IMG/VR virus record: IMGVR_UViG_3300040801_002079
Location: 186,001 to 250,000 of that record
DNA length: 64,000 nt
Strand: one strand, 5' to 3'
Part shown: positions 25,087 through 61,635 of the stretch, one piece after another
Layout: the number at the start of each line of letters is the position of its first letter
Position numbering within the stretch: the stretch's first letter is position 1
Notes under the pieces: generated by a model
What the model was told of the DNA's origin: nothing
What the model saw: the letters and a program-made list of their open reading frames with translations, nothing else
The model's database searches: none
Program-made: the position numbers and the translations under genes

Positions 25087-26274
25087 TTAATTTAGATCAG
25101 CTAATAAATCATCTTTTCCTAATGTAAAGCCAGATTCAGTCCATTTAGATTTAAGAGAATTTAATATTCGCCCAAGTTCTGGTCCCGGCGATATGCCTAA
25201 TCTCTTTAAATCTTCACCATTGACTGGAAAAGTAGGGGCATCCCAATTTTGAAACTTATTCGCAGCCCCATTTTTATTCTTATACACAAGCAGAGCGTGA
25301 ACAAGATTTTTCTTTATTCTCAGCATGATATGCATTTTCTTAGCTAGAGTTAAATTGATGTCCTTATCACGATGCTGTAATATGGTTTTCATCATTTCAT
25401 ATTCTGGGTTACTGAATTTCCACCGTGACCTTACATCATTCAACTCATCGACTGAACTTAATAACGATGCCATTAATAGGTTTGGGTCCTTTGTATTATT
25501 GTAAACTCGACTGAACTCCTTGAGGTTTGGATTGGGTAATCCAATATTATTCATAACCCCAGACTCTTTCATCTTGGACAATATTAAAGGGGCATGATTG
25601 CCTGAAAGGATTTTTGCCATTTCCATCCATATCCTTTCACCGCTTATTCTTTTCAAGCCTTCTGCATTTTTTGCAATCTTGGATAGGGTGTCCTTATCAA
25701 AGTTAGGAGACTCGGTTCGACCCTGAAATCTAAAATATCTAAGAATTCTTAAAAAATCTTCCTGCATTCTGGAATCAGCATCCCCAACAAATCTCGCTGT
25801 ACCAGATTTCAAATCCTCATGACCCCCATGATAATCATATAGATTACCATCAAAGTCCATGCTCATAGCGTTAAAAGTGAGGTCCCTTCTTTCCGCATCC
25901 TGTTCCCAATCTTTGGTATACTCAACTTCAGCATGTCTGCCATCAGTTTCAACATCTATGCGAAGCGTTGTTATTTCGTAATCCTCGCCATCAATGTGAG
26001 CAACCACTGTGCCGTGCTGTAGCCCCGTTTCAATCACTCTTATATCATTGGCCTTAAGTAACTCCATACTCTCGTTAGGAGTCGCATCTGTGGCTAAATC
26101 AATGTCCTTAGGCTCCTTATCCATAAGTATGTCACGCACAGCGCCACCAACAATTCGAAGTTCGTGTCCGTTTTGCTTATAAAGCTGATTAAGGCGTAAC
26201 AAATTCTTATCCAACAATCTGTTAAGAGTTTGCTTCTTATTTGTTACTTGCTCTAAGAGAATACTAAGTTTCAT
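25087..26274 (-). CDS. cca: CCA-adding tRNA nucleotidyltransferase
   Basis: VGGAVRD, DIDLAT, EITTLR, RRDLTFNA, EDFLRILR, ISGERI. Confidence 0.93.
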   Translation of the reverse strand: MKLSILLEQVTNKKQTLNRLLDKNLLRLNQLYKQNGHELRIVGGAVRDILMDKEPKDIDLATDATPNESMELLKANDIRVIETGLQHGTVVAHIDGEDYEITTLRIDVETDGRHAEVEYTKDWEQDAERRDLTFNAMSMDFDGNLYDYHGGHEDLKSGTARFVGDADSRMQEDFLRILRYFRFQGRTESPNFDKDTLSKIAKNAEGLKRISGERIWMEMAKILSGNHAPLILSKMKESGVMNNIGLPNPNLKEFSRVYNNTKDPNLLMASLLSSVDELNDVRSRWKFSNPEYEMMKTILQHRDKDINLTLAKKMHIMLRIKKNLVHALLVYKNKNGAANKFQNWDAPTFPVNGEDLKRLGISPGPELGRILNSLKSKWTESGFTLGKDDLLADLN

Positions 26275-26290
26275 AGTGATATTTATAAAC

Positions 26291-26366
26291 TGGTGCCCGC
26301 AGACGGAATTGAACCATCGCCTTCGTTCTTACCAAGAACGTGCTCTACCTGCTAAGCTATACGGGC
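26291..26366 (-). tRNA. tRNA-Thr(GGT)
   Basis: loop TTGGTAA, CCA. Confidence 0.93.
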
Positions 26367-27284
26367 TAAAATGTTATTCAAATGGGACCGCTTCACGGCT
26401 TCAACATTTTTAAGATCATCCCACTTCATTTGCCGACGATACATTTCACCAATGAACGCTCTTCGCTCATCATCGTTTGAGAAATGTCTAGATGCTATGC
26501 CACACCCATACGTTGTTATTCGTGAATGATAAATTAATGTCTCAACCATAACCGTACTATTCAGACCAAACACCATATCAGCGTATGGCAAATAGTGATG
26601 GACATCATCGGTAACTTCAACCAAACGGGGGTCTTTTAATGTTATTGGGGCTGGAGCCAGAGGATGTCTCTTATATAGAATCTTTCTATCGTCAAACCTG
26701 AAAATGTTAAACACCTGTTCTAAAAATTCATTCATTGTTTTGAACGGAGAATATTGTGTAATCTGCGTGTCAGTCTCATCTTGCATTGGAACAAAAATAA
26801 ATGGCTCATTGACTAGACGGGGCTTCTTATATTCCTGCTCTAGAGCCTCGCATATCAATTTGTCCTCATACGAGAAATCTTTTGTATGCTTAACACCTAT
26901 GATGCTATGCTGAGTGTTAACACCGCATCTATCGAAATAGCATGTTTTATCATAATGCCCAAAGAATCCAAGTTCACCAAAAATCATCTTATCTCTTCCA
27001 ACATGGCTAATGAACTCTCGGTCACCATCGCTGTTCCCATTCCATGTAATACATACATCAGGGTTTATTTCTTTAATGAAGCCGCTATCAACAACTGGAG
27101 TTACCCGAACATTAAGCGGGTCTCCATTTTCGCGTGGCACCTGTGCTTGCGTGTGAACCATCATTGATACATCATGACCCATCTCAGTTAATGATTTACC
27201 CAAGTCTGTAAATAATCTATTAATAGTGGTCCAACGGTTTGGTCTATCAGTATTACCCGCGCCACAGTGAAACATTATCTTCAT
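26352..27284 (-). CDS. KpsS/KpsC-like capsule glycosyltransferase
   Basis: FVPMQDETDTQI, KRHP, NSTVMVETL motifs. Confidence 0.7.
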   Translation of the reverse strand: MKIMFHCGAGNTDRPNRWTTINRLFTDLGKSLTEMGHDVSMMVHTQAQVPRENGDPLNVRVTPVVDSGFIKEINPDVCITWNGNSDGDREFISHVGRDKMIFGELGFFGHYDKTCYFDRCGVNTQHSIIGVKHTKDFSYEDKLICEALEQEYKKPRLVNEPFIFVPMQDETDTQITQYSPFKTMNEFLEQVFNIFRFDDRKILYKRHPLAPAPITLKDPRLVEVTDDVHHYLPYADMVFGLNSTVMVETLIYHSRITTYGCGIASRHFSNDDERRAFIGEMYRRQMKWDDLKNVEAVKRSHLNNILARIA

Positions 27285-27745
27285 GGCTTTTCCTTTATAA
27301 TTTTAGCAGGACTCCCCGCAACAATCATGTTGGGCGGCACATCCTTATTAACAAAACTGTTTGCCCCAATTACTGAATTTTCCCATACTGTAATACCACA
27401 ATTGAATGTAACATTAGCACCGGACCAAACATTATCTTTTATGTATAAGTGACTTCGTATTAGCTTCTTTTGAATATTGGGATTGGATGACATCTCATGA
27501 TATGATGCCAGTAGTGTGCAGTGGGGTCCAATCATGGTTTCCTTACCTATAACAACTTCTCCCGTTGCCTGTACCATGGTAAAGAAACCCAGCACCGAAT
27601 TGGCACCAATCTTTAACATTCCGTCAGCCATTTCTATAATGCTGTTATGTCGTATCTGCGCCCCATTATCAATTATTACCGTTCCCGATCCCAGAAATTT
27701 AACGGTCTCATGCACTCGTCCATTGTTGATTACTTTAACTGCCAT
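27281..27745 (-). CDS. left-handed beta-helix O-acyltransferase
   Basis: hexapeptide repeats, IGANSFVNKDVP..VAGSPAK. Confidence 0.88.
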   Translation of the reverse strand: MAVKVINNGRVHETVKFLGSGTVIIDNGAQIRHNSIIEMADGMLKIGANSVLGFFTMVQATGEVVIGKETMIGPHCTLLASYHEMSSNPNIQKKLIRSHLYIKDNVWSGANVTFNCGITVWENSVIGANSFVNKDVPPNMIVAGSPAKIIKEKP

Positions 27746-27747
27746 TT

Positions 27748-30735: not shown

Positions 30736-31845
30736 ATGAAATTATATTTTTACAATACACTACTGAACATTATGAAAATGTTTATCCAATGTGATAGACC
30801 ACTAAGCCATAAGAACTATAAAAAGATATACAAAAAGAAACTATACTTTGAATTAAAGCAAAAACATGATTTTAAAGAATTTGATTTATGGTTTAATCGT
30901 ACATGGAAGTATGCGATTTTAGACAATACCAATAGTGACACATTTGTTGGCTCAGTTATAGAATCTACTATCCTATTAATGAAGCAGTTTAGCCTCAGAC
31001 ATGTGTGTGGAATTCAACCACTTAACGGTCCAGTTGGGTCGGCATATACACTATCAATTACCCGCAATGACACCAATCCATCCAAAATGTGTTTAGAAGT
31101 CATAGCAAACAGTGTACAAGCGGAAGCCAAGCGGCTGAATACCCAATATACCCTTGAGGCTGCACAGGATTTAAAGACGCATCATAATATTGATTTACAT
31201 CAAGACTTGAATGAGATGATATCTCAATCCATTGACGCAGAATTTATGGAAGAATTTATATCCGAAGTAAAAGAAAAGTCCCCCATTAAAGAAACTTTCA
31301 CTATGGACACCATAAATGCAAATACCATGGAACTGCTGCACGGTCAAATTAATATCATAGCTAGTAAAATTGCAATGATAACACGCCGGGGTGCGGGCAA
31401 TGTCATCTTCACATCCCCCTATATTGCTGCCCTACTTGAAGAATATGGACACATCAAACCGAATAGTTATAATTCAGACCTAGATAGTTTAAACCTTCGA
31501 CACGTTGGGCTTCTCAACCAGAAAAGAGACATTCAGGTATATTCATATAATGGTGCAGAACCTGAATTTCTAATGATGGGATATAAGGGGTTGAACGAAA
31601 CCGATGCGGGTCTAATTTTCTGCCCGTATATACCAATACTGTCCACTGGAGTTGTTATGGATAAGGAAACGTTTAACCCCACTGTTACATTTATGACTCG
31701 CTATGGAAGGCAGGCAGTTAATGATACCACCGAATCATGGGAAATGGAAAACAACAATCGCTTCATCTATTATGGTATATTGGATTTGAAATTACCGGAA
31801 GCATATGAGGGTGACGCTCAGTTACTGATGGAAAACGCTGCATAA
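30736..31845 (+). CDS. second, divergent gp23-family capsid protein
   Basis: CGIQPLNGPVG, YTLEAAQDL, TRRGAGN, FCPYIP, FMTRYG; own sigma70 promoter TTGACT-N17-TACACT. Confidence 0.85.
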   Translation: MKLYFYNTLLNIMKMFIQCDRPLSHKNYKKIYKKKLYFELKQKHDFKEFDLWFNRTWKYAILDNTNSDTFVGSVIESTILLMKQFSLRHVCGIQPLNGPVGSAYTLSITRNDTNPSKMCLEVIANSVQAEAKRLNTQYTLEAAQDLKTHHNIDLHQDLNEMISQSIDAEFMEEFISEVKEKSPIKETFTMDTINANTMELLHGQINIIASKIAMITRRGAGNVIFTSPYIAALLEEYGHIKPNSYNSDLDSLNLRHVGLLNQKRDIQVYSYNGAEPEFLMMGYKGLNETDAGLIFCPYIPILSTGVVMDKETFNPTVTFMTRYGRQAVNDTTESWEMENNNRFIYYGILDLKLPEAYEGDAQLLMENAA

Positions 31846-32775: not shown

Positions 32776-32777
32776 AG

Positions 32778-33905: not shown

Positions 33906-34685
33906 TTAACTATTACGCCGCCGCAATATCTTAATATTACGATCTTTCAACTTCTTTGACAAATACGCTGATCCCACTCTATCCTGTCCCTTGGATATAT
34001 TAAAATGTCTTAAGGTTTTACTAACAGACCCATTAGTATTAAAAACCTCAATAATTTGGTCCATATTGTCATCAATCCATTTATAATGTGGTGCCCTATA
34101 ATACATCCTGCATTTTTTACTACAAAACCTATGCTTGCCATAAGTAGTAAAAGATTCACCACAAAACTGACAATCTTTAGTTACAGCACACTTTTCCTTT
34201 TTATAGGTTATCTCCCTTATAGCATTATTAAAACTAGCGGAACAACTTGCATTACAAAATTGATTCAATCTTTTCTCATATGGTAACTCACTATTGCACT
34301 GGGTGCACCGCTTCGGGTTATTTTCATATTCCTCTCGTATGAGTTTAGCCTTTGCATAAGCCCCGTTGCGTCCTCGTTGAGCGTAGTCATCACTGGACGT
34401 TAAATCATTTACATGATCCCATCCACCACTTCCTCCGTTCTTAATATTATATGAATCTGGATCACCGGGATCAACCAATTCAAATTCCATTAAAAACATG
34501 TCTTCCGGGTTATCAAACACAGCTAAAATTTCTTTCTCAAAATTCTCAATTCCGTATTTTTTAATGGCTCTTTTTAAAACCTTACCTGAACCCATATACC
34601 CATCATCTAAATTAACGGTCTTATGGCAACCTATATAAAACCTGCCGTTAACTTTATTCATTATCTTGTAAACTATAAAATGCAT
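33906..34685 (-). mobile_element. GIY-YIG (Seg-like) homing endonuclease
   Basis: [28 protein letters not shown]; start at MHFIVY after CATAAATA. Confidence 0.85.
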
Positions 34686-34749
34686 AATAGTATTTATGCA
34701 TTTTGTAAACGCAAGATAACGTTTCGACTGACATGACATCAGTCCAATG

Positions 34750-39869: not shown

Positions 39870-39887
39870 GAATATATTTATTTAAAT

Positions 39888-42697: not shown

Positions 42698-42817
42698 TTC
42701 ACTCTCCTATTCTTGACTACCCTAACAGTTAGCATCTACTCAACCTTCCGGCGTGACCTGTGGCTCTAAAGGATTCTGGTCTGGTAGTCGGTACTACAAT
42801 CCTTTTTTCCCATAATC

Positions 42818-42903: not shown

Positions 42904-42909
42904 ATTGTT

Positions 42910-43836: not shown

Positions 43837-44040
43837 TTTACTTTTCTAACAATCCAGTCAATACTTTCCGATCCGGCTAACATCAGGGCTACCCATAAAA
43901 TCAAATAAAGCATGGAATATGCCCCGAATGTATCACCATACGTATCGGCTAAATATTTAAATAATTCATAGCCACCCCATAGATTAAGAATGACCCATAT
44001 TAATTTGAGTATTGATATTCTCATAGCAATAAATAATAAC

Positions 44041-46599: not shown

Positions 46600-46675
46600 T
46601 GGCAGGCGAGGAGGGCCTCGAACCCCCAACCTGCGGTTTTGGAGACCGCTGCTCTTCCAATTAAGCTACTCGCCT
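46600..46675 (-). tRNA. tRNA-Trp(CCA)
   Basis: loop CTCCAAA, CCA. Confidence 0.95.
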
Positions 46676-47283: not shown

Positions 47284-47304
47284 GTATGTATTTATACTAA
47301 TATT

Positions 47305-48389: not shown

Positions 48390-48727
48390 GGCATATCTCC
48401 TACATCCATTATTTCCTGACGAACTTTCATTATCTCTTTAAGCTGTTCCTTGTACATATCATACTTAATCTGCTCATTAACCGATAATGTTCCACCCGCT
48501 TCTTCAATCTTTCCATACATTTCGATTCTCATTTCAAGTAATAGCATCTGAGTATCTATATGGCGAAGATCGGATATTTCTTTGTGCATGTAACGAGTGT
48601 CGAGCCATAGTGCACCCGTAATCATCATACCAAGTAAGGTTCCCAGAACGGGTCCAAAAAGAATTAATCTTTTATACCATTTCTTAATGGCTCTAGCGGT
48701 TTGATCAGTTTTAACTTCGTCATTCAT
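48386..48727 (-). CDS. membrane-anchored coiled-coil protein
   Basis: single TM; late promoter. Confidence 0.6.
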   Translation of the reverse strand: MNDEVKTDQTARAIKKWYKRLILFGPVLGTLLGMMITGALWLDTRYMHKEISDLRHIDTQMLLLEMRIEMYGKIEEAGGTLSVNEQIKYDMYKEQLKEIMKVRQEIMDVGDMP

Positions 48728-48786
48728 ATACCTATTTATGCTCAGAGCTTAGACATTTTTCATGTCTAAGTGTCTAAGTACAGGAA

Positions 48787-48862
48787 TGGCGGTCCCGGTA
48801 AGAGTCGAACTTACACCATCCAGAATCAGAATCTGGCGCTCTACCAGTTAAGCTACGGGACT
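48787..48862 (-). tRNA. tRNA-Gln(CTG)
   Basis: loop TTCTGAT, CCA. Confidence 0.92.
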
Positions 48863-48867
48863 ATATG

Positions 48868-49167
48868 TTACTGTAGAACATCTTGAATAAGTGATATGTA
48901 GTCACGGTCTCCACGGGTTGTAATTTCATTACCATCCGCTTGGTCCTGTGTTACTATCCATGTTTCCTCATGTACCATTTCACCACTTGAAACACAAACA
49001 AAGTCAGCGACCATTTCAGGGCTATACTCATTGATTTCTTCTAGATATTCCGCGACATACTTATCACGGGCTGCTCTAGCCCTATCAATATCTCCAAATA
49101 TGCCCAAGGATTCTACATTAAATCCACCCGAACATTCAGCATGTTCTAAACGATAAATTTTTTGCAT
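48868..49167 (-). CDS. hypothetical protein
   Basis: ORF in operon. Confidence 0.55.
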   Translation of the reverse strand: MQKIYRLEHAECSGGFNVESLGIFGDIDRARAARDKYVAEYLEEINEYSPEMVADFVCVSSGEMVHEETWIVTQDQADGNEITTRGDRDYISLIQDVLQ

Positions 49168-49171
49168 TTAC

Positions 49172-49438
49172 TTAAGCCTCAAAAAACTCAGGAAGTGCTT
49201 CTTTCAATTCCTTTGTAGTTAAGACGGTATGAGTTAATTCCTCAACAACATCACCAACCTCTTCTCTCAGGTCTTCTATGTTGGAATTAACGTCTTCAAC
49301 CGTTGGCAATTCTTCATAACCGATAAGGTGATTTATGTGTAACTCGCCCTCTTCCTTATCCATTTGAAAAAATACAACCCAGTGCGAACATTCATTAACA
49401 TTAAATTCTTCCATAACTTTTCCTCTTAGTTCCACCAA
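49172..49438 (-). CDS. hypothetical acidic protein
   Basis: ORF in operon. Confidence 0.55.
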   Translation of the reverse strand: MVELRGKVMEEFNVNECSHWVVFFQMDKEEGELHINHLIGYEELPTVEDVNSNIEDLREEVGDVVEELTHTVLTTKELKEALPEFFEA

Positions 49439-49902
49439 TAAGGGACTTCACGATTAGTCCACTTGGCAATATGATTTTTATGCATTTTATAATAATTTCT
49501 ATACGCTTGTACAGGGTTTCCCTCAACTTTACATTCATCGGGCATACACTGTGGAAATTCTGTTAGACCCCTATCTGGCATATTTTCAGGAAGATACATC
49601 AATGCATCAGATTTTTCAACCCATGTTTTGTGCACCTTTCCATACCTGAACGTGTACTCATTACATAATTCTTCGAACAAGTAATATGCCCAGACATAGT
49701 TAGACGCAGATTCTCTCACCCAAACTGCGGAAGGGTGATTAACATGCGTCTTACGATATAAAGATTCTGCTAAGGGTGATTCATAAACATGATGTGCCGT
49801 AGACAAAAGCTGGGCCGTTTCAAGTATCATCTTTACCACATGTTTATCATTGTGGTAACGGGCTGCTTGCTGTACATCTTCATCTAACAAAAATATATTC
49901 AT
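49426..49902 (-). CDS. pyrimidine-dimer DNA glycosylase family protein
   Basis: MNIF.LD, DKHVVKMILETAQLLSTAH, HVNHPS..W, QCMP, AYRNYY. Confidence 0.85.
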   Translation of the reverse strand: MNIFLLDEDVQQAARYHNDKHVVKMILETAQLLSTAHHVYESPLAESLYRKTHVNHPSAVWVRESASNYVWAYYLFEELCNEYTFRYGKVHKTWVEKSDALMYLPENMPDRGLTEFPQCMPDECKVEGNPVQAYRNYYKMHKNHIAKWTNREVPYWWN

Positions 49903-50107
49903 GAAGCTATTATAGCAATTTTACTCCGCAACTTCAACTATACGATCAATGCTGCCAATAAAAACGTGACCATCATAGTCCCCACCAACAACTTCTCCGG
50001 TAAAGACCCCATCTTCACGAGGAGTGTCGCTTACACGAACAACCTTCACCTTGAAAAGTCTTCCTTGAACATTTTCGTATATTACTTCATCATCTATTCT
50101 AATCATT

Positions 50108-50308
50108 TTAACAACCTGTTGTAAATAGTTCCTTGATTGCTGGACCAAAGGTTGCAAGAATTCCTGCAATACTCGCTACTGTAATCAAGCCCAGTACAAT
50201 CCATTTTGTTTTAAAATCATCTGCTGCAATTCTAAAACCAATAAATTCATTTCCTAAAACGCGAATGCTCATTTCAAATGAGCCGTCCTCATTCTTCATA
50301 TCAACCAT
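50108..50308 (-). CDS. small membrane protein
   Basis: GGGGA RBS, C-terminal TM. Confidence 0.55.
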   Translation of the reverse strand: MVDMKNEDGSFEMSIRVLGNEFIGFRIAADDFKTKWIVLGLITVASIAGILATFGPAIKELFTTGC

Positions 50309-50327
50309 TAAATTCCCCTATTAAATT

Positions 50328-50421
50328 TGGCGGTGGGGGTGGGATTTGAACCCACGGACCTGCTTTCACAGGTCGCTGGTTTTCAAGACCAGTGCAATAA
50401 ACCAGACTCTGCCACCCCACC
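50328..50421 (-). tRNA. tRNA-Ser(TGA)
   Basis: loop CTTGAAA, long V-arm. Confidence 0.95.
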
Positions 50422-50436
50422 ATTGTATATAGTGTT

Positions 50437-50531
50437 TGGCAGAAGGGATGGGATTCGAACCCATGGATGGGTGTTACCCCCATCTCCACCTTTCCAAGGT
50501 GGTGCATTAGTCCAGACTCTGCCACCCTTCT
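50437..50531 (-). tRNA. tRNA-Ser(GGA)
   Basis: loop TTGGAAA, long V-arm. Confidence 0.95.
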
Positions 50532-50534
50532 ATA

Positions 50535-51107
50535 TTAAACCATGCATCCTATCAGTAAATTAAGAGTCTTATCGTAATCATCTTGTTTCTTCTGATATTC
50601 TTCGTTTCTACCCAATATATCTATCGCTCGTTTCATTGAGTAATAATTTAGCCCATTATGAAAGTCAGTTTGAACAAAATGCTCGTGATGTTCCTCATTG
50701 AACAAATGCTGTTCCATGTCATCAATAATGACATAAGCCTCTATATCATCACGCTTTTCCAGCCATTCCGATATGCGGTGAGTGCGTCCATATAATTCGC
50801 GATCACCAGAAAGACTGAAGCCTGAGCTTTCAGTTCTTCCAACAAACACCGTTCGAGGGAAAGTAAACCCCCGTTCTACAAACATATCATAAAGCTCTTT
50901 AATGGAAAAAAGCTCTCTCCATGTACTGGAAACCACAATCTTGGCATCAGTTTGTTTAAGTATCTCCTCAAGAAGGGCTAACTTTCCCGGAGAAATGACC
51001 TCTGCTCCATGGTTATAAGGATGATCTTCAACATAATCCTTTTCCATAAAATCGGTGGTTGAGTTTAAAACTCCATCAATATCTAAAAAAATAACTTTCA
51101 TAGTCAT
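50535..51107 (-). CDS. HAD phosphatase (Swiss-army-knife RNA-repair type)
   Basis: FLDIDGVLN, VVSSTWR, YVIIDD. Confidence 0.85.
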   Translation of the reverse strand: MTMKVIFLDIDGVLNSTTDFMEKDYVEDHPYNHGAEVISPGKLALLEEILKQTDAKIVVSSTWRELFSIKELYDMFVERGFTFPRTVFVGRTESSGFSLSGDRELYGRTHRISEWLEKRDDIEAYVIIDDMEQHLFNEEHHEHFVQTDFHNGLNYYSMKRAIDILGRNEEYQKKQDDYDKTLNLLIGCMV

Positions 51108-51219
51108 CTATTTATGATATTACAAATAAGTATGGAAGTCAAGTTGACAATGGCAGTTGCCGCATTGCCTTCCGTCCCCGACACCTGTTCACACACTGCC
51201 ATGCATTATGCGGTGCCTC

Positions 51220-51292
51220 ACACCCCGACAGGAGTCGAACCTGCAACCGAGAGCTACTATGCCCCCAACTCTGCCGTTGAGTTTACGGAGTA
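51220..51292 (-). pseudogene. tRNA-like element with aberrant anticodon loop, no CCA
   Basis: acceptor TACTCCG/CGGGGTG, D and T arms, 6- or 8-nt loop around ATAGTA. Confidence 0.6.
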
Positions 51293-51301
51293 TTTCTAAT
51301 T

Positions 51302-51425
51302 TGGTATGGTCAGCGGGAGCCAAACCTTGAACGTGGTTCCGGACCTTCTGTTCATTTTTCGCAGCCTCTGCCTTCGCAATTCCGGAATGCTACTAACAGC
51401 CGTTTTATCATTAAACTATGACCAT
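51302..51425 (-). ncRNA. 124-nt tRNA-derived RNA ending ACCA
   Basis: ATGGTCA/TGACCAT acceptor, D arm, expanded interior. Confidence 0.6.
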
Positions 51426-51433
51426 ATTGTTTT

Positions 51434-51509
51434 TGGTGCAAGGTCTAGGAATCGAACCCAGTTAGTCGGCTCTTCAGACCGCTGCAATGACCACACTTGC
51501 TCACCTTGC
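51434..51509 (-). tRNA. tRNA-Phe(GAA)
   Basis: loop CTGAAGA, CCA. Confidence 0.88.
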
Positions 51510-51539
51510 AAAATCTTTTTATCATTTATAAATATAAAC

Positions 51540-51920
51540 ATGAAACTCAATAATATATTACAAGAAAACGGATATACCTATCCAACTTCAAACAAAACCA
51601 TAACACTTTACCGAGGATTATCACGAGAATTTGATCCAACATATGATAATTCAACACTGGACTCTCCAACAGGATATAGTTGCTGGTCAGATACTCCTGA
51701 ACTGGCAAGAGCTTATGCTGGAGATGATGGTTATGTTTATAAAATAGAGTTACCTTTAAAGGAATTAGGGGACACTTTTATTACTGATGATGGCGATAGG
51801 CCCCTATTTTATAAATCGGATCATGGCGCTAATATAAATGGAGCGCGTGGACAAGAATACATGATATACCATGATCATGAAAATTTCTCGCCCGATTCGA
51901 TTAAATTAACCGATTACTGA
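51540..51920 (+). CDS. ADP-ribosyltransferase-like protein with head-targeting leader
   Basis: LYRG, SCWS..A..YA, QEY (R-S-E-like); MKLNNILQE after TATAAATA. Confidence 0.6.
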   Translation: MKLNNILQENGYTYPTSNKTITLYRGLSREFDPTYDNSTLDSPTGYSCWSDTPELARAYAGDDGYVYKIELPLKELGDTFITDDGDRPLFYKSDHGANINGARGQEYMIYHDHENFSPDSIKLTDY

Positions 51921-51936
51921 ACTATAAGCATATAAT

Positions 51937-52013
51937 TGGTCTCCGTGGTGGGATTTGAACTCACAACCTCTTGGCCCCAAACCAAGTGCTCTCCCAAATT
52001 GAGCTACACGGAG
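51937..52013 (-). tRNA. tRNA-Pro(TGG) second copy
   Basis: loop TTTGGGG, CCA. Confidence 0.92.
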
Positions 52014-52021
52014 TTTGAATT

Positions 52022-52097
52022 TGGTGCATCTGGTTGGGCTTGAACCAACGGCCTCCTGCATGTCACGCAAGCGCTCTCCCAACTGAGCTACAGATGC
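52022..52097 (-). tRNA. tRNA-Val(GAC)
   Basis: loop GTGACAT, CCA. Confidence 0.92.
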
Positions 52098-52100
52098 ATA

Positions 52101-52195
52101 TGTCCATATTTTGATCCAACACTTTTTCAGAAGGACCGCGCTACCAGTTTAGCTACCAGCTTTCGCTGAACAGGACTCGAACCTGCATATGGACA
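52101..52195 (-). ncRNA. circularly permuted tRNA-like (YrlA-like) RNA
   Basis: terminal stem TGTCCATAT/ATATGGACA enclosing T arm, GAAA-closed acceptor, D arm. Confidence 0.7.
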
Positions 52196-52251
52196 CAGTG
52201 TTTCTCATTCTATACAATTCACGTTTTTTGTATATTATGAGAAACAGAAAA

Positions 52252-52866
52252 TTATTCTTTGATGTAATTAAATTTATCGAAGTCTTCACCAGCCCATTCA
52301 TTTACCAATTTTGTAGCTTCTGGTGATTTTATCTCTTCCCAAGTTCTATAGAAGGGTTTTGATTTCATAGAAAAAACAACGGGGACTTCAATATAACTCT
52401 TTACGAATGGAAGATTATTGAATTGTTCAGTTGCATGTTCTATCTGAATAAATGCATCCATACGCATATTGTTCAGCCTCTGCTCAAAATATAAATGCAG
52501 TGGAACCAAGGATGCTGCAACTTTAATACCATCTAACCCATGCTGCATCATGTTTTCCCTTTCAGCAACAACCCATTCCAACGTTGAAATCAATGTTGGC
52601 TCTTCTCCTATCATTTCCTTTATTTGGGAACCATGCATTGCATCAGGATTCATAATCAATGACCAAGCTGAGGCGAATCGATTATATGGACTCCTAACAG
52701 TGCAAAATCTAAAATAGTCTTCAGCGTATTCGGGAACCTCGTGGTTGTGGTAATGACCCCCCGAATGCTCACCTTGAAAATGTTCGGTTAAAAATTCAAA
52801 CATAGCATGAGTTCCCGTTTTAGGAACAGATACAAAAACATAGTTTAATTCTTTTGAAATTATCAT
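52252..52866 (-). CDS. sulfotransferase family 2 protein
   Basis: FVSVPKTGT, VRSPYNRFASAW, DFDKFNY. Confidence 0.8.
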   Translation of the reverse strand: MIISKELNYVFVSVPKTGTHAMFEFLTEHFQGEHSGGHYHNHEVPEYAEDYFRFCTVRSPYNRFASAWSLIMNPDAMHGSQIKEMIGEEPTLISTLEWVVAERENMMQHGLDGIKVAASLVPLHLYFEQRLNNMRMDAFIQIEHATEQFNNLPFVKSYIEVPVVFSMKSKPFYRTWEEIKSPEATKLVNEWAGEDFDKFNYIKE

Positions 52867-52971
52867 TTATTGTATTTATGAATAAAAGAGTAAGCACGAG
52901 GTTGCGAACCTTCTCCAGCATTGGCGATATGTTGCGATCATTCTCTCCGCCGCATTACTTACTCATAAATC

Positions 52972-53047
52972 TGGTGGTCCGTGCTGGACTCGAACCAGCA
53001 ACCTTTCGATTATCGGTCGAATGCTCTACCAATTGAGCTACCGGACC
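52972..53047 (-). tRNA. tRNA-Ile(GAT)
   Basis: loop CCGATAA (C33), CCA. Confidence 0.92.
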
Positions 53048-53212
53048 TTACAATTAGCCGATTGTAAATACTACAATTAGCCGATTAAAATGTCGCAATT
53101 TATCCCGCAAAATTGCGGGATAAAAATGGAGGGGGTGCCTATATACCGCAGACAAATGATACTGATAGGCTCCTCATCATTCCGTTGGTCTCCCCTCCTG
53201 ATAAATATACTT

Positions 53213-53857
53213 ATGAAACTCAAAGACCTATTAACCGAAACACCGCTGCCACCAGATTGGGATAAAGATAAATTCAAATCATCTACCCCGTTTGCGCAAC
53301 GTGTTCGCTATGCTAAAGAACGTGCAAAACAAATCGGTGTCGGTTCAGCCCGTATTGCATTTGAGGTTGAATACGAAGGCCGTCCTACTATTTTAAAAAT
53401 AGCCAAGAACAAAAAAGGGATTGCACAAAATGAATATGAATCACAAATGTTCAATGATTACTACCTGCGTAGTCTTGAAATAACCATTCCAATAATTGAC
53501 CATGATGAAGAAAATGATCCTCCGACATGGATTCATATGGAAAAGGCTGAAAAAATGAAGCCTACTCAATTTAAAAAATTCTTTAACGGTATGGACCCCC
53601 ACGAAGTCCTAGATGCCGTAACATACTTAACAGGTAAAACCCGACAATTTAATCGTCCTAGTCAAGAAACCATTGACAAATACAATGAATTATTCGAAAC
53701 AAACGAGTATATTAATAGTCTCGTAGACTTAACTGGCAATTATGATATCGAAGCCGGGGATTTTGCCCGTTTAGCAAACTGGGGAATCTATAAAGGAAAC
53801 CCCGTTATTATCGACATCGGTGGTAGTAGTGAAGTTATTAAACTTTACTATATGTAA
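53213..53857 (+). CDS. protein-kinase-like protein with head-targeting leader
   Basis: IGVGSARIAF, ILKIA, QNEYE, MEKA, D...NWG, IIDIG; MKLKDLLTE after GATAAATA. Confidence 0.75.
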   Translation: MKLKDLLTETPLPPDWDKDKFKSSTPFAQRVRYAKERAKQIGVGSARIAFEVEYEGRPTILKIAKNKKGIAQNEYESQMFNDYYLRSLEITIPIIDHDEENDPPTWIHMEKAEKMKPTQFKKFFNGMDPHEVLDAVTYLTGKTRQFNRPSQETIDKYNELFETNEYINSLVDLTGNYDIEAGDFARLANWGIYKGNPVIIDIGGSSEVIKLYYM

Positions 53858-54092
53858 ATGGTAGCTGGTGCCTACCCTATGATATTTTCTCTTATCGATT
53901 GGCCTCACAGTTCGGCGCTATCCCAGACCCGTGCGGCCTTGGCTCGACTATAGTCTAACCGCACTTCATATTTTGTAACCTTGGGGCATAATCAAGGTTA
54001 ATTCGTGCCAGCGGCTCTGTACTTTGGCCTACATGTGTGCTTTTCATCGCCCACATGACGGGGTATTCTCCCGCAACGCACTGGCTTCTATC

Positions 54093-54181
54093 TGGTGGAG
54101 GTGGAAGGATTCGAACCTACTCAGCCGCTAAGGGCAACGGGTTTACAGCCCGTCCCAGATCACCGTCTCTGGAGCACCTCC
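54093..54181 (-). tRNA. tRNA-Tyr(GTA)
   Basis: loop CTGTAAA, V-arm, CCA. Confidence 0.92.
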
Positions 54182-54189
54182 TTTAATTT

Positions 54190-54266
54190 TGGCGGAACAG
54201 AAGGGCCTCGAACCCTCACCCCCTTCCGTGACAGGGAAGTACTCTACCTACTTAAGCTACTGCTCC
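54190..54266 (-). tRNA. tRNA-Asp(GTC)
   Basis: loop CTGTCAC, CCA. Confidence 0.95.
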
Positions 54267-54620
54267 ATAATTTCTCATATGTAATAACATATAAATTCCG
54301 AAAAATATATATCATTACATATAAAAAATAAAGGGGGCGGGGCTACACATCATTTCACCATCATCACCTACAACCCATGTCCGAAGACACAACGGCACCC
54401 TACCGTACACCCCCTCATAATTAAAGGGATTTTTCACGGGGGACACGTTCACAGACGCATTCAATCCCCATACCACAGCACTAGTGATACCACTCTCCTA
54501 GTGAGTTGCGCATTGGAAGCCGGGGCATTTCAGCGCTTGCGGTGATTCCAACACCTAATTGGATTTAACGTCATCATTGCTTTGGTATACAACTCTTTTA
54601 AATCCTGCCCTTTCAGGCAT

Positions 54621-56817: not shown

Positions 56818-58125
56818 TTAAACTTCCTCGAATTTAACCCTAAGAAGAACTGTGGTTTTCCTACCACGGTACTCATCATGCTTTTTAATGGTTCCCATGA
56901 TATCATACGTGGTATCATCTTCCATGCGTTTGCGGCTACCGTTCCACCATGTGAATGAATTGCCAGCATCATCTTCCATTTTAACAAGCTGCTGGTCTTT
57001 CTCATTGTATCCAAAGTAAACGGTCTTTATCATGGTTTTCACTACCTTAACACGAGTTTTCGGCAGTTTGTCTCCGGGATTACCAATCCACTCATTTGAT
57101 TTCTTTTCTTTCTTCTGCTTATCCTGCTCACCTTTAGCTCTTTCGTATGCAGGGAAAATTGCAACAAGATAACCCACATCTCTCCATGTGATATGATCAC
57201 TGTTATAGATTACATCAATATTATGATAAAAATTATTGTTTTGCTTTTCATCATCACTAACTTCATTTTCAAACCAGTTAGTGACCTTTTCAAGATATGC
57301 TTCTTGTTTGGGTCCAAAATCTTTTGCAACCTTCATCCATTGATCATACTTTTCAACATCATAGCGATTTAATGGACGCTGATTGAAAATCAATTGTTTA
57401 ACAATGGAACTAGTGGTGTCTTCACCATAACCCGCAGCATTATATGAAAGGTATCCATATTCATCGATAATAGATGCTGCTACTTTGAGAACGCGGTCAC
57501 GAGACGCTGCATACTCTGAACGTCCACGAAGCTTACCTTCGTAGTTCTCAGCATTGCTCATGATGTTATCAACGCGATCTTTAAGAGAGAACCACCAAAG
57601 CATTTGTTTGGGGTCTTTACCACCCAAGAAATCAGCTAGGCAATTTCTACCGATTTGTCGAAGATCACCCGTCTGCTCATCACGAATGATATAAGTATCA
57701 ATTCGCGCACGTTTCTTTTTACAATGATCACAATATTCAGGCTTAGCGTCATAGAAGTTTTTAACATTAGACTCATCAACTCCGGGCATGGTACGAATAA
57801 CATTACCAGTACCCTTGTGTTGAATTGTTGCTAAAAACTGATACCCCGGAACATGAGGAGCTTCACCATCAACCTCAACAGTTACATACTTCTCTTCAAT
57901 CTCATCACCATCACGTTTGATAGTTTTAAAGAATGGTTCAGAAACATCCATGTGAATCTCAGGGCTACCAATTTTAGCGGCTTTGCGATTCAGCTTTTCA
58001 ATTTCATTCTTTAGGTGGGGAAGAACTGCGTAAGAAATATCTTGAGTCGAACTAAACCCAGCATCATTGGGTCCGTCTTCTTCTTGTTCATTCAATTGTT
58101 GCGGGGTGATCTGCGACAATTTCAT
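56818..58125 (-). CDS. hypothetical with zinc-ribbon and C-terminal OB-like domain; head-targeting leader
   Basis: CDHC..R.R..GRNCL; GTIKKHDEYRG; MKLSQITPQQLNE. Confidence 0.7.
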   Translation of the reverse strand: MKLSQITPQQLNEQEEDGPNDAGFSSTQDISYAVLPHLKNEIEKLNRKAAKIGSPEIHMDVSEPFFKTIKRDGDEIEEKYVTVEVDGEAPHVPGYQFLATIQHKGTGNVIRTMPGVDESNVKNFYDAKPEYCDHCKKKRARIDTYIIRDEQTGDLRQIGRNCLADFLGGKDPKQMLWWFSLKDRVDNIMSNAENYEGKLRGRSEYAASRDRVLKVAASIIDEYGYLSYNAAGYGEDTTSSIVKQLIFNQRPLNRYDVEKYDQWMKVAKDFGPKQEAYLEKVTNWFENEVSDDEKQNNNFYHNIDVIYNSDHITWRDVGYLVAIFPAYERAKGEQDKQKKEKKSNEWIGNPGDKLPKTRVKVVKTMIKTVYFGYNEKDQQLVKMEDDAGNSFTWWNGSRKRMEDDTTYDIMGTIKKHDEYRGRKTTVLLRVKFEEV

Positions 58126-58167
58126 TGTAAGTTCCTGTGGTGTTTAACTGCGTTAAATTATATCACA

Positions 58168-58593
58168 CTACAATTTCTTTTTCAAGTAAGAAACTGCGCT
58201 TCCTGAGGGTTCAAATGAAATTGCATTAAACTTTAACTCAACGCTATCCCTCTTTCCTTCTTCAGTTACATACTCAACCGTTACACTGTATGGTGATTTG
58301 TTACTTCCTAATTTAAAATCAGATGGTGGATTTGTAAGCTGAATATTTAGTATCTCTTTGGCTTCCATATTTGTAGCCTTAGCTAACGTTTTAGCCAACT
58401 TTACTGGGCCAATGTCTAAACTAACAACACCTCCATCTGGAATCCTGACTGCACCTTCCTTAGTTTCAAACACAACATCATTAATGTTGTATGAAAGTGA
58501 ATCTGGAATATTTTCTAAATCTGCACCAGATACTCTAACTTTGACATCAAATTCGTCATCTTTAGCTTCTGTTAGAATATCTGATAATTTCAT
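58168..58593 (-). CDS. probable internal head protein
   Basis: MKLSDILTE leader. Confidence 0.65.
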   Translation of the reverse strand: MKLSDILTEAKDDEFDVKVRVSGADLENIPDSLSYNINDVVFETKEGAVRIPDGGVVSLDIGPVKLAKTLAKATNMEAKEILNIQLTNPPSDFKLGSNKSPYSVTVEYVTEEGKRDSVELKFNAISFEPSGSAVSYLKKKL

Positions 58594-58595
58594 GA

Positions 58596-59219
58596 TTAAA
58601 CCTTTTTAATCACATTCTCAACGAACTTGCGAATTTCAGCATTAAAATATTTCTGAGCCGCTGGATCATGCTTCAAGCTTTCAGCAAGACTGATAATTCC
58701 AGCATCCTCAATTGCTTCAGTAATAGTATTAGGCATTGCTCCGGGAGCGGATGGAGTAACAACCAAGTCAACTGTAACAAGATTAAATCCTGAAACCATT
58801 CCACCCTCACTAACAACGCCTGCTCCACGACTGGATACACCATAGCGTACACCAGACTTGGAAAGTTCCTGTGCAATCATACCCATCGGGGTATCTAATA
58901 GCTGTGCTTTACCAACAACATTATTTCCGTCCATGTAGATATCTTTAATGGCATGGGAAATACGGTCCATGTTAATAGTAATCGTATCGGGATGATCTAA
59001 TTCACCAAATACTCCACCAAAGTCATTGATCTGCTGGCGCATACTATTAACTGCTGCTGTCATTTCATCCAGCTTATAAATGCGTCCATTTCTATTCTCA
59101 ATCTCGGCTTGCATAAACGTTCCGACCAAATAAGTCTTTCCGTCACTCTTAGCCTCTGTAATGATGTTTCCCTGAGATGCCGTGGTGGTCTCAATTAATA
59201 ACTGCTGCTTCATGTTCAT
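58596..59219 (-). CDS. prohead protease (gp21-like)
   Basis: NRNGRIY, GELDHP, GVSSRG.G, DLVVTPSAPGA. Confidence 0.93.
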   Translation of the reverse strand: MNMKQQLLIETTTASQGNIITEAKSDGKTYLVGTFMQAEIENRNGRIYKLDEMTAAVNSMRQQINDFGGVFGELDHPDTITINMDRISHAIKDIYMDGNNVVGKAQLLDTPMGMIAQELSKSGVRYGVSSRGAGVVSEGGMVSGFNLVTVDLVVTPSAPGAMPNTITEAIEDAGIISLAESLKHDPAAQKYFNAEIRKFVENVIKKV

Positions 59220-60334
59220 TATCTCCTAAGTTCGGGGTCTCTGTCCATTTCTTCCCATTCTTCAAATGAGATGTACCAGTCCGAATCTGGATCATAGTAC
59301 TTGCCTTCCTTCGGGTCGTAATATACAACCTTTCCGTTTCGCGCTCGGAATGGACCCTCAAGCCCCTCGCGCTCCTGATAACGATCCCGATCTATTGGTG
59401 GGAGGATTCGATATCCTTCCATCATAGGCTCAGGAACTTCAATTCCATAATATGCCAACAATTGTTTCCACTGTCCAACAGTTAAACCAATAGAATGTTT
59501 GGTTACGTTACCATAATCAACATCGCTAAAATTCATAGGAACGGTTCTGAAAACTTTTGTTACAATCTGTTCCCTAAGCTTGTTAGGAATTTCACCTTCA
59601 TTGGATGACATCTCAACAAACCCCGCTTTTCCATTTAAACTTCTAAACCGGGGAGAAGGGATTTTTAACTTTCTCGCCAACTGGCGTAATGCCTTAACAA
59701 CGCCTTTTTGTTGTTGGGTTGCTTCGACAATGTACTCATCGACTGATTCCTTGATTCTAAACACATCGAATATGTGTTTGATAAGGTCTTCGACTTTTTC
59801 AAAATCCGCTTCTTCACCGGTTTCATCTACTCTAAAAACTATACCTCTATCGAAATCATCTAAATCATTCTCAATAGTGCCTACCTTTTTGCCATTAACA
59901 AAAACGTCATCACCTACAAACTTAACAGCACCAAGCTTTAACTCATTAAGCTGGTTAGCTCTGCGTGACACCTTATCAGCTATAAGCCCCTGCATTAACT
60001 CTTTTGCAGTATCAAGCTCTTCATGTAAAACACAAAATATAACTTCCTCTAGAATATCCTCATCGGTTTGATCAAAATCTTCATTAACACCAAATCTGTC
60101 AATAACGTGAGCTTGTACATTTCGTGGAAGTTCATCAAACGCAATTTCAACATCCTTGCGTGAAACAACATCTGGATCAAACTCACCCCACTGTGAAAAC
60201 CCATGTTGCGCATGTGCTGGATCATCACTTAGCCCTAGACCGCCAAGCTCAGGATCATCAGCCAAGAAAACCGTGTATCTATCAACGGTTTCACCGCCAT
60301 TATCAAATACTCTAAACATTTCGTTATAATTCAT
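59219..60334 (-). CDS. probable head/core protein
   Basis: between portal and protease; multiple L/I-x-E sites; YYDPKEGKYYD. Confidence 0.65.
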   Translation of the reverse strand: MNYNEMFRVFDNGGETVDRYTVFLADDPELGGLGLSDDPAHAQHGFSQWGEFDPDVVSRKDVEIAFDELPRNVQAHVIDRFGVNEDFDQTDEDILEEVIFCVLHEELDTAKELMQGLIADKVSRRANQLNELKLGAVKFVGDDVFVNGKKVGTIENDLDDFDRGIVFRVDETGEEADFEKVEDLIKHIFDVFRIKESVDEYIVEATQQQKGVVKALRQLARKLKIPSPRFRSLNGKAGFVEMSSNEGEIPNKLREQIVTKVFRTVPMNFSDVDYGNVTKHSIGLTVGQWKQLLAYYGIEVPEPMMEGYRILPPIDRDRYQEREGLEGPFRARNGKVVYYDPKEGKYYDPDSDWYISFEEWEEMDRDPELRR

Positions 60335-60337
60335 AGC

Positions 60338-60706
60338 TCAATACTCATTTTTGTACATGTGATAGCGTTCTTCCCACGCTGCCATACGATCCTCTTCATC
60401 GTAATCTCTATAATCGTCCCAGTTTTCTTCATCATCTGGACTACGTTCGGTTAACTCATCTTCAATTGCCATCATAATGTTATCAACATAATCCGCATTA
60501 TAGAAATCGGTTGGGATAAACCCAAGTTGATGTAAATATTTTTTAAAGGGTTCATCGTCCTTTACACGTAAGCCCCCTAGTGCTCCTCGCTCCAATGATG
60601 CATATAAGTCCTCTAATACATCCGTATTGAGGCTTCCAATAACAGAAGCATCACTACGATTAATCGCACTCATGTCCACTTCTAATAAAATGTCGTTAAG
60701 TTTCAT
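60338..60706 (-). CDS. probable internal head protein
   Basis: MKLNDILLE leader. Confidence 0.65.
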   Translation of the reverse strand: MKLNDILLEVDMSAINRSDASVIGSLNTDVLEDLYASLERGALGGLRVKDDEPFKKYLHQLGFIPTDFYNADYVDNIMMAIEDELTERSPDDEENWDDYRDYDEEDRMAAWEERYHMYKNEY

Positions 60707-60990
60707 AAGTCAAACTGATCCATATCTGAGTCTGCAAGACTAATCATTTCTTCCGTATCATCAATGAACTCATCTCCCAATGCTGAAACTACTTCATACC
60801 AATCAACATTTTTGGGATTAATTCCGTAATACCTGAAATCAAAATTCTTGAGCAAAAAGTCTCGAACCTCTTTCCAATGTCCCATTAGATATAGCTCTTC
60901 CAGTTGCTCAGGGTGATCACCCAATGCTTCAATCATTGCCGAAGTATCTTCAAACCCCAAACCTTCTACTAAAATATCATTAAGCTTCAT
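60703..60990 (-). CDS. probable internal head protein
   Basis: MKLNDILVE leader. Confidence 0.65.
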   Translation of the reverse strand: MKLNDILVEGLGFEDTSAMIEALGDHPEQLEELYLMGHWKEVRDFLLKNFDFRYYGINPKNVDWYEVVSALGDEFIDDTEEMISLADSDMDQFDL

Positions 60991-61167
60991 ATTAATTCGC
61001 CTGATGTGCCTTGTATAAGTACTTAACTAGTTTCTTACCTGCACAATATTCCATTTCCTCTTCCGATAGCTCTTCGGATTCACAATCAACATCCTTGAAC
61101 CTTTCATCCACATCCTTATCCATTCGTTTTTTCTTTTCGGTTAAGAATTCGATAAAAGTTCTTTTCA

Positions 61168-61635
61168 TTATCTTCTTTCCAATTTATCAGCTATGTTACT
61201 TAATAGATCATACGTTCTTCGTAGCTGCTGGACAGTTTCTGGGTCCATCTTTCTATAACCATGTCTTACTGCTTGCCAAACTTCCCATACATTTTGAGCG
61301 GCAACATTGAGTCTGCGCACATAACTCATATCAGGGGAATCTAATTCCTGTTCACTTATATGAAAAGCTAATGAATTCTCATCCAGTTTTTCACTTAAAT
61401 TTTCCAAATGATGAATGACCTTATCGCAACGGTCATCATCTTTGCAAAGCATTTCGGAACACTTTGCTAGATCAACCTCATCAACATCACATTCTTTCTT
61501 GAGATATTCATTAAATTCATCTTGTACCTTTTTGCTACATTTCTTATACAAAAGCTCAAGATATGACTTCATCTCATCGGATGACATTCTCTTTTCGTGA
61601 TCTTCATTAAGACTTTTTAAAAATTTTAAATTCAT
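61168..61635 (-). CDS. probable head protein
   Basis: MNLKFLKSLNE; late promoter. Confidence 0.6.
   Translation of the reverse strand: MNLKFLKSLNEDHEKRMSSDEMKSYLELLYKKCSKKVQDEFNEYLKKECDVDEVDLAKCSEMLCKDDDRCDKVIHHLENLSEKLDENSLAFHISEQELDSPDMSYVRRLNVAAQNVWEVWQAVRHGYRKMDPETVQQLRRTYDLLSNIADKLERR

Follow-up and report, generated by a model that had tools for sequence, protein, structure and literature searches.

A 64,000-nucleotide stretch of DNA from an uncultivated phage (IMG/VR record IMGVR_UViG_3300040801_002079; the whole stretch is referred to below as the window) encodes a predicted CCA-adding enzyme, two protein-kinase-like proteins, an ADP-ribosyltransferase (ART)-superfamily-fold protein and several head-cluster proteins that open with a short N-terminal leader. 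This leader is probably a lineage-specific form of the T4-type capsid-targeting and propeptide signal, which would load enzymes, the CCA-adding enzyme among them, into the phage head. The window covers bases 186001–250000 of a 316,801-bp viral contig that carries direct terminal repeats, was judged complete and originates from a microbial-mat metagenome. The closest cultured relatives are distant (Xanthomonas phages Xoo-sp13 and XacN1 and Stenotrophomonas phages RAS14 and CM1; portals ~49% identical). The capsid gene is present in a metatranscriptome from the same mat sample, the contigs of which do not span window positions 48400–54399. All whole-genome counts given below rest on a crude gene call of 544 predicted proteins. 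Genes bearing the leader (carriers) or its longer variant are as follows, with positions numbered within the window:

25087–26274, minus strand: predicted CCA-adding enzyme (class II tRNA nucleotidyltransferase), 395 aa; leader MKLSILLE, then Q
44041–44751, plus strand: protein-kinase-like protein, 236 aa; leader MKLKDLQE; ATAAATA at 44029–44035
51540–51920, plus strand: ART-superfamily-fold protein, 126 aa; leader MKLNNILQE; ATAAATA at 51528–51534
53213–53857, plus strand: protein-kinase-like protein, 214 aa; leader MKLKDLLTE, then T-PLPPDWD; ATAAATA at 53201–53207
56818–58125, minus strand: head-cluster protein, 435 aa (phrog_2319); longer N-terminal variant, QLNE ending at residue 13
58168–58593, minus strand: head-cluster protein, 141 aa; leader MKLSDILTE
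60338–60706, minus strand: acidic protein, 122 aa, isoelectric point (pI) 4.1; leader MKLNDILLE
60703–60990, minus strand: acidic protein, 95 aa, pI 4.1; leader MKLNDILVE
61168–61635, minus strand: head-cluster protein, 155 aa; variant ending SLNE at residue 11; ATAAATA and Shine-Dalgarno sequence upstream
Outside the window: GNAT acetyltransferase; leader MKLKHLFE
Outside the window: P-loop AAA_33/polynucleotide-kinase-like protein; leader MKIRELKE
Outside the window: 121-aa protein; TTG start
Outside the window: two adjacent acidic proteins; leaders MKLDQ[IV]LNE
Outside the window: 106-aa protein; leader MKLKTLFE

The shared N-terminal leader

An earlier note on this DNA, made from the sequence alone, had read nine N-termini of the window as one common leader. 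All nine are present on the strands and at the coordinates listed above. A single leader holds for seven of them (starts 26274, 44041, 51540, 53213, 58593, 60706 and 60990), which fit the strict motif MK[LI]xx[ILV][LFQYI](x)E, but not for the proteins starting at 58125 and 61635, which have a longer and looser variant with an LNE end (residues 11–13 and 9–11, respectively) whose sites are kept in the nearest relative. Across the genome, the strict motif stands at the N-terminus of 14 of the 544 proteins, against an expectation of 0.05 and a maximum of 2 in 1000 shuffles of residues 2–30, and it heads only 1 of 675 proteins in XacN1. A looser regular expression matched 17 N-termini and none of 2156 internal methionines. 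The Leu, Ile and Glu codons of the leader differ synonymously between copies, indicating that selection acts on the peptide. In the genes starting at 44041, 51540 and 53213, the MKL start is internal to a longer open frame; we take it to be the true start because ATAAATA lies exactly 5 nt upstream and ~100 homologues of the 214-aa protein start at that Met. The leader is the sole similarity among the carriers, and in all members it ends in [LIV]xE just ahead of the folded domain.

The genome-wide search with the regular expression yielded a larger set than the one first listed, including the GNAT acetyltransferase and the P-loop kinase; the other carriers outside the window have no assigned function. 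Leader genes are clustered in tandem hotspots. Two candidate assignments were rejected: the 126-aa and 121-aa carriers as paralogues (no similarity by BLASTP) and a 134-aa protein (genome position 130553) as a ParB-like nuclease (no support from Pfam or PHROG). A 153-aa open reading frame (ORF) directly downstream of the capsid gene (17927–18388, minus strand) reads MELLKELLGE and then S near its start and may have a differently worded leader.

In T4, the internal proteins share only a ~10-residue N-terminal signal, MKTYQEFIAE, which takes them into the core of the prohead and is cut off by gp21 (PMC9026906, PMC8442874, PMC12373910); residues 4 and 7 are important for targeting, and residues 8 and 10 for processing (PMC8442874, PMC9026906). 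Foreign enzymes fused to this signal become packaged and injected (PMC9026906, PMC8442874, PMC12373910), and T-even ip genes have been identified from the signal sequence alone (PMC12373910). When both are aligned from the cleaved Glu, residues Y4, F7, I8 and E10 of the T4 signal are matched by L3, I/L6, L7 and E9 of the leader described here. This likeness is one of pattern (MK start, hydrophobic, hydrophobic, x, Glu), nine residues being too few for a statistical test of homology. Like T4 IPI, IPII and IPIII, the carriers have the leader as their only similarity, with a hydrophobic-x-Glu end, and are encoded in variable tandem hotspots by a phage with a gp20/gp21/gp22/gp23-type head. The two systems differ in consensus (MKLxDILxE, 8–9 aa, in the window's phage) and in that many genes here lie behind a promoter with leaderless spacing, and the present system is known from its sequence alone. 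Moreover, T4 internal proteins are small basic restriction inhibitors, whereas acidic proteins predominate among the carriers, which include several enzymes of 126–395 aa.

The wording of the leader varies from phage to phage, yet it does so jointly across unrelated proteins of one genome. While the window's phage uses MKLxDILxE, a 363-kb relative (G001) has MK[VI]x[DE]ILxE on ~10 proteins, a closer relative (G002) has four leaders in a row (three MKLQxLFE and one MKLNELFLIE), and a further genome (G004) has MRATEFITE on two adjacent genes together with MKINQIITE, MKVTQVLSE and MRISEILFE. The regular expression of the window's phage found almost nothing in XacN1 because that phage uses another dialect, recognized through orthologs (..QFL[AS]E, QLFDE and SLIE on ORF170, ORF171, ORF219 and a 277-aa protein; ORF170 is a homologue of the kinase-like proteins). 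Such co-variation is expected of a signal that the core and protease of the individual phage recognize. The P-loop kinase and the CCA enzyme of XacN1 are without the leader, and by these sequence comparisons the leader is an add-on to the carrier proteins.

Carriers that survive in a prohead containing an active [LI]xE-specific protease would be expected to avoid the motif internally. We counted [LI]xE after the first 12 residues of 16 strict or near-strict carriers, with expectations derived from composition, and observed a modest depletion (20 versus 26.4 expected; observed/expected ratio (O/E) 0.76), compared to an O/E of 1.21 in the rest of the proteome. Values as low were obtained for only 0.9% of random 16-protein sets (resampling p ~0.009), and the carriers were not depleted in [LI]xD, [LI]xK or the reversed motif. 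Among families, whose sequences are not phylogenetically independent, O/E was 0.62 for the kinase family and 0.59 for the leader-bearing clade of CCA enzymes, versus 0.81 for 107 leaderless CCA enzymes and 1.23 for four from isolate phages. Given the modest effect, the non-independence and the lowish value of the leaderless CCA clade, we treat the depletion as support and not as proof, and we rejected the family-level values as strong proof.

Head machinery and the carrier proteins

T4-type head genes are encoded in the same window, and a gp55-like late sigma factor is encoded just outside it:

18466–19893, minus strand: major capsid protein, gp23 type (Pfam Gp23, 7e-92)
19939–20883, minus strand: acidic coiled-coil scaffold, gp22-like by position and composition, upstream of the capsid gene
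58596–59219, minus strand: prohead protease of the T4 gp21 family, 207 aa (Pfam Peptidase_S77, 2.9e-22; phrog_207, 7e-58)
61729–63414, minus strand: portal protein, T4 gp20 type (Pfam Portal_T4, 7e-86)

The N-terminus of the protease itself contains LIE at residues 8–10 and ITE at residues 20–22; an LIE in the protease N-terminus has likewise been noted for T4 gp21. The N-terminal 46 residues of the capsid protein resemble the T4 propeptide and hold four candidate sites (VLTE, VLLE, LLE and LLAE46), the last of which lies, in an alignment to T4 gp23*, four residues ahead of the one that pairs with residue 16 of gp23*. In the scaffold, [LI]xE occurs 18 times versus 8.0 expected from composition (2.25-fold). 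As the earlier note had described, the non-enzyme members of its list lie in the portal–protease cluster. In the closest relative (G003), the ortholog of the 435-aa protein keeps QLNE at residue 12, the ortholog of the 155-aa protein keeps ALNE followed by DHEK, and a syntenic 156-aa gene keeps the leader MKLSNILNE, while the remainder of the 141-aa protein is undetectable by tblastn. The 95-aa and 122-aa proteins are absent from the head module of G003.

The head module of the window's phage is split, with the scaffold and capsid genes ~38 kb from the portal–protease cluster (18466–20883 versus 56818–63414); in the relatives G001 and L030, the protease gene is grouped with those for the scaffold and capsid protein. 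A gp24-like paralogue is found at 30736–31845 (plus strand), and a small ORF at 43497–43826 (minus strand) holds the conserved N-terminal capsid-protein motif (Pfam Gp23 positions 8–44, E 4e-10) behind an Arg-Arg hydrophobic N-terminus.

Among the enzymes, the 395-aa protein is firmly a class II nucleotidyltransferase, based on matches to PolyA_pol (PF01743, 2.6e-34), PolyA_pol_RNAbd (PF12627, 2e-12) and phrog_2244 (3e-64) and on visible GGAVRD, DIDLATD and EDFLR motifs, so the Pfam evidence bears out the call made in the earlier note; its CCA-adding specificity is predicted, the name being taken from PHROG and source annotations. The enzyme resembles the CCA-adding enzymes in the RNA-repair set of jumbo phages (PMC7824862) in its class (II nucleotidyltransferase) and in having its gene next to a large array of tRNA genes. 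However, the enzymes of isolates (Atu_ph07, the CcrColossus group and XacN1 ORF446) are without the leader, and the clade described here adds ~17 residues that begin with it. Isolate-phage homologues align only from residue 32, the N-terminus is 11–19 aa longer than in the Atu_ph07, CcrPW and Kikimora versions, and the XacN1 enzyme begins directly at the catalytic motif.

A 61%-identical ortholog in G002 starts MKIKTLIE, and most of the nearest 120 database homologues (47–72% identity, some on 220–350 kb contigs) have leader-like N-termini, in forms that include MKLxxLxEQ, MRAYELTEE, MRLHQFITEAT and MRATEFIKE. The leader clade has ~40 residues before the VGG motif, compared to 21–25 in the leaderless clade, and on one contig with a leader-bearing homologue, two adjoining genes use the same dialect (MRVSDIIHE and MLVEQIIQE). 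Because most of these homologues carry a leader, we regard possession of a leader by the CCA enzyme as a trait conserved in a broad clade, most of it uncultured, rather than as an accident of one genome. No report of a CCA-adding enzyme as virion cargo was found in the literature searched.

For the two kinase-like proteins, the calls of the earlier note hold at the level of fold and motif. Structural neighbours in the Atlas are kinases (TM-score 0.5–0.8), and the catalytic-loop motifs DLHSGN...SDPF (in the 236-aa protein) and DFARLAN...IDIG are visible; neither protein has a Pfam match at E ≤0.01. The 236-aa protein matches phrog_15752 (T7 0.7-type kinase, 5.5e-4), and its Atlas neighbours are Phage_T7_kinase clusters (TM-score 0.72). 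No relatives of it were found in IMG/VR by word-pattern search, and the only homologues recovered, at 26% identity, are those of RAS14 and CM1, the former (RAS14 42433–43140) starting MKLIDLFE. The 214-aa protein matches phrog_4301 (1e-12) and has kinase-fold neighbours in the Atlas; by BLASTP it shares only MKLKDL with the 236-aa protein. Across ~120 of its homologues, a leader of 8–16 residues always ends in [LIVF]xE one residue before an invariant PLPxDWD, and the wordings include MRADEFITE as well as the near-T4 leaders MKSKDFIAE and MKTFKQFLKE. In the G004 fragment (L054:1159-2157; IMGVR_UViG_3300017917_000199), GNAT and kinase-like domains, which the window's phage encodes as separate genes each with its own leader, are fused into a 332-aa protein with the leader MRATEFITE. 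The fusion junction reads VIDE and then M-PLPADWD, an internal site at the same domain boundary, and the next gene repeats MRATEFITE.

The ART assignment of the 126-aa protein stands at fold level, together with an invariant Arg / Ser-Thr / Glu set. An AF2 model (pLDDT 89, with residues 1–19 unstructured) has exclusively ART-superfamily proteins as its top PDB matches (RES toxin, ParT, PARP1, KptA and diphtheria toxin), with weak scores (E 0.02–1, TM-score ~0.5); the best are RES toxin, ParT and PARP1 (E 0.02–0.1). R25, Y46, E106 and H113 are invariant in 43 homologues, and the stretch Y46-S-x-W-T is invariant or nearly so. The family has 139 representatives, many of which are modules in giant multidomain proteins beside GNAT, ART-PolyVal and RadC/JAB domains. 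Based on the model, ‘ART-fold’ is a reasonable label, and any enzyme chemistry is at most predicted.

The region also holds 37 tRNA genes (window 21176–54266), all on the minus strand and with small ORFs between them; the kinase-like and ART-fold genes lie inside this array on the opposite strand. One ARAGORN tRNA call (51219–51293) has an abnormal anticodon loop. Two homing endonuclease genes interrupt the tRNA region, each following ATAAATA with a 5-nt spacing (ATAAATA-N5):

33906–34685, minus strand: GIY-YIG-type homing endonuclease (phrog_314, 3e-40)
46666–47283, minus strand: GIY-YIG-type homing endonuclease (phrog_314, 1e-49)

Late-type promoters and leaderless spacing

Each of the four enzyme genes of the window follows a late-type promoter, as had been claimed: all four read ATAAATA, 5 nt and then ATG. 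ATAAATA occurs at 156 genomic sites, with 65% of these falling within the 9.5% of the genome that is intergenic, and its distance to the start codon is bimodal, being either 17–30 nt with a Shine-Dalgarno sequence or exactly 5 nt. The longer spacing heads the genes for the portal, terminase large subunit, head-tail adaptor and baseplate wedge, among others. The 5-nt spacing heads 30 genes (31 sites, versus 2–5 at neighbouring spacings) and leaves no room for a ribosome-binding site. It is also present in G002 and L103, is weaker in G001, XacN1 and RAS14, and precedes the CCA ortholog of G002 and two leader-bearing genes of another lineage. Minus-strand sites in the window, and MKL-starting genes with this spacing elsewhere in the genome, are as follows:

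26280–26286, minus strand: ATAAATA late-type promoter core of the CCA gene, 5 nt before the ATG and directly after a tRNA-Thr gene
34691–34697, minus strand: ATAAATA-N5 site
39875–39881, minus strand: ATAAATA-N5 site
47289–47295, minus strand: ATAAATA-N5 site
Genome 82563–83177, minus strand (outside the window): ATAAATA-N5 gene starting MKLK[DE][LI] or similar, no final [LI]xE
Genome 119444–119674, plus strand (outside the window): same type of gene
Genome 121005–121469, plus strand (outside the window): same type of gene
Genome 129378–129872, plus strand (outside the window): same type of gene

T4 late transcription initiates about six bases downstream of TATAAATA. If the distance is the same here, the 5-nt spacing would place the mRNA 5′ end at the A of the start codon. 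The ATAAATA-N5-ATG arrangement thus predicts that a T4-like transcription system makes a class of leaderless late mRNAs. No description of leaderless late mRNAs of this kind was found in our literature search. A leader-bearing CCA gene of another lineage (L102:590-634; contig ERZ24794644 NODE_5486) lies behind a sigma-70-like TTGACA-N16-TACACT with 6 nt to the ATG, an arrangement that is also apparently leaderless. Judged by sequence, the carriers stand in a late context, with ATAAATA before the four enzymes and before structural genes and a gp55-like sigma factor encoded. MKL starts are found in 9 of the 30 ATAAATA-N5 genes versus 21 of the 514 other genes, and the four such genes without a final [LI]xE (one a methyltransferase starting MKLKDLKVYQGE) may represent decayed leaders, a mobile promoter-plus-leader cassette or an effect on translation.

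Proposed capsid loading and alternative explanations

We infer recruitment, cleavage, retention and ejection of the carriers. The carrier proteins would be made late, and the leader would recruit them to the scaffolding core during prohead assembly; the gp21-family protease would then cut after the leader Glu, and the mature carriers would remain in the head until they pass into the host along with the DNA. With a CCA-adding enzyme loaded in advance, tRNA 3′ ends would be repaired ahead of all phage gene expression. Two classes of carrier are probably present: enzymes and effectors (the CCA enzyme, the two kinase-like proteins, the ART-fold protein, the GNAT and the P-loop kinase) and small acidic head-cluster proteins. 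The latter may be degraded parts of the prohead core, like T4 gp67 and gp68, and not delivered cargo. Accordingly, the proposal of the earlier note that the leader-bearing proteins are virion cargo is favoured by the head machinery, the placement of [LI]xE at the domain boundary, the co-varying dialects, the internal depletion and the late promoters, and is narrowed by the separate, longer class to which two of the nine N-termini belong and by the possible core role of the small acidic proteins.

Related strategies are known in other phages. T4 Alt, a packaged ADP-ribosyltransferase present at ~40 copies per head and trimmed by gp21 (PMC9026906), is a host-modifying enzyme loaded into the head with an N-terminus processed by the prohead protease, and an ART-fold carrier is encoded here. 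That 126-aa carrier is no homologue of Alt; by fold it comes closest, with weak scores, to RES, ParT and PARP. In phiKZ, 201phi2-1 and SPN3US, numerous head proteins are cut after the Glu of a short motif by a protease related to gp21, and ejection likewise involves many proteins (PMC9026906). These are also jumbo phages with propeptide-cleaved ejection proteins, as proposed here, but they differ in having an S/A-x-E motif, long propeptides instead of a shared 9-mer, and a nucleus-forming lineage with a virion RNA polymerase. Polyvalent proteins (Iyer et al. 2017, cited in PMC7824862) deliver ART, GNAT and kinase domains with the DNA, matching the cargo types found here, and the 126-aa domain recurs, as noted above, in giant multidomain proteins beside GNAT, ART-PolyVal and RadC/JAB domains. 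In polyvalent proteins, the effectors are fused into one large protein with a MuF-type packaging module, whereas here they are separate small genes, each with its own leader.

Several observations weigh against capsid loading. Within single protein families, the leader can be read simply as a conserved N-terminus, and the virion enzymes named in the XacN1 paper (chitinase, lipase and M23 peptidase) are without such a leader. The acidic character of most carriers departs from that of the small basic T4 internal proteins, and the residues after the leader Glu (Q, N, T and V) are less typical than the Ala or Ser of T4. The depletion of internal [LI]xE has the modest size and the family-level non-independence noted above. 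Finally, four of the nine MKL-starting ATAAATA-N5 genes are without the final [LI]xE, so that some of the ‘MKL’ signal may reflect leaderless expression.

The last point is the core of one alternative, in which the common start is an expression signal (an initiation region or a nascent-peptide effect) of late and often leaderless mRNAs with no role in the capsid. While the 30 genes with the 5-nt spacing and their excess of MKL starts agree with this, most of these genes have unrelated N-termini, about eight full leaders belong to genes that have a Shine-Dalgarno sequence or are translationally coupled (one with a TTG start), and the synonymous variation of the leader codons also speaks against it. 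In addition, the dialects of other phages keep hydrophobic-hydrophobic-x-Glu and the domain boundary without nucleotide similarity, and we consider this explanation very unlikely. Chance, or the remnant of a paralogous N-terminal domain, could draw on MK being the commonest protein start in the genome (89 of 544), but is refuted by the 14 observed versus 0.05 expected matches, by similarity that ends after 8–9 residues and by differing downstream folds, and we give it almost no credence.

A different alternative retains the capsid but not the injection: proteins bearing the leader would enter the prohead and serve there as accessories of the core or scaffold, to be degraded by the protease and expelled before DNA packaging. 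This agrees with the 95-, 122- and 141-aa carriers (pI 4.1–4.9) being encoded between portal and protease, the place of T4 gp67 and gp68, with the absence of the two smallest from the head module of the closest relative, and with the fate of T4 core proteins, which are cleaved and mostly lost (PMC9026906). It makes little sense of intact enzymes (CCA, kinases, ART and GNAT) with their catalytic motifs retained, and carriers are depleted in internal [LI]xE, the opposite of what is seen in the scaffold; we regard this alternative as unlikely. The leader could instead be a peptide signal with some other role: it could be a degron, a tag for a chaperone or for another compartment of the phage, or an inhibitory pro-sequence whose cleavage releases the enzymes from a silent state. 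Nothing specific points to such a role beyond the many uncharacterised proteins encoded in this clade, and it leaves unexplained the match to the functional positions of the T4 signal, the gp21-type P3 and P1 residues, the head-cluster members, and the depletion of [LI]xE in carriers alongside its enrichment in the scaffold, so that we rate it as decidedly unlikely.

Capsid targeting by an N-terminal signal is a known mechanism, while the cargo repertoire and phylogenetic breadth proposed here appear undescribed in the literature searched. As a broader and more tentative proposal, which we put forward as possible though doubtful, a T4-related jumbo clade (relatives of XacN1 and RAS14, mostly uncultured) may pre-load its capsids with a tRNA 3′-end repair enzyme, host-modifying kinases, an ART-fold enzyme and an acetyltransferase, using a leader that evolves with the phage's own core and protease. 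The leaderless spacing of the late promoters of many cargo genes suggests a portable promoter-plus-leader cassette by which new cargo could be recruited. Such phages would be armed, before any of their genes are expressed, against tRNA-targeting and other abortive-infection defences. Cultured relatives with leader-bearing homologues (RAS14/CM1 and XacN1/Xoo-sp13) make the idea directly testable. If true, the capsid cargo of T4-related phages would not be limited to small restriction inhibitors and Alt but would extend to an enzyme tool-kit that includes a tRNA CCA-adding enzyme, and a genome-specific N-terminal leader ending in [LI]xE would provide a simple rule by which injected effectors could be predicted across hundreds of jumbo phages not yet in culture. 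It would also point to damage to tRNA 3′ ends as a defence that a phage must answer within seconds of injection.

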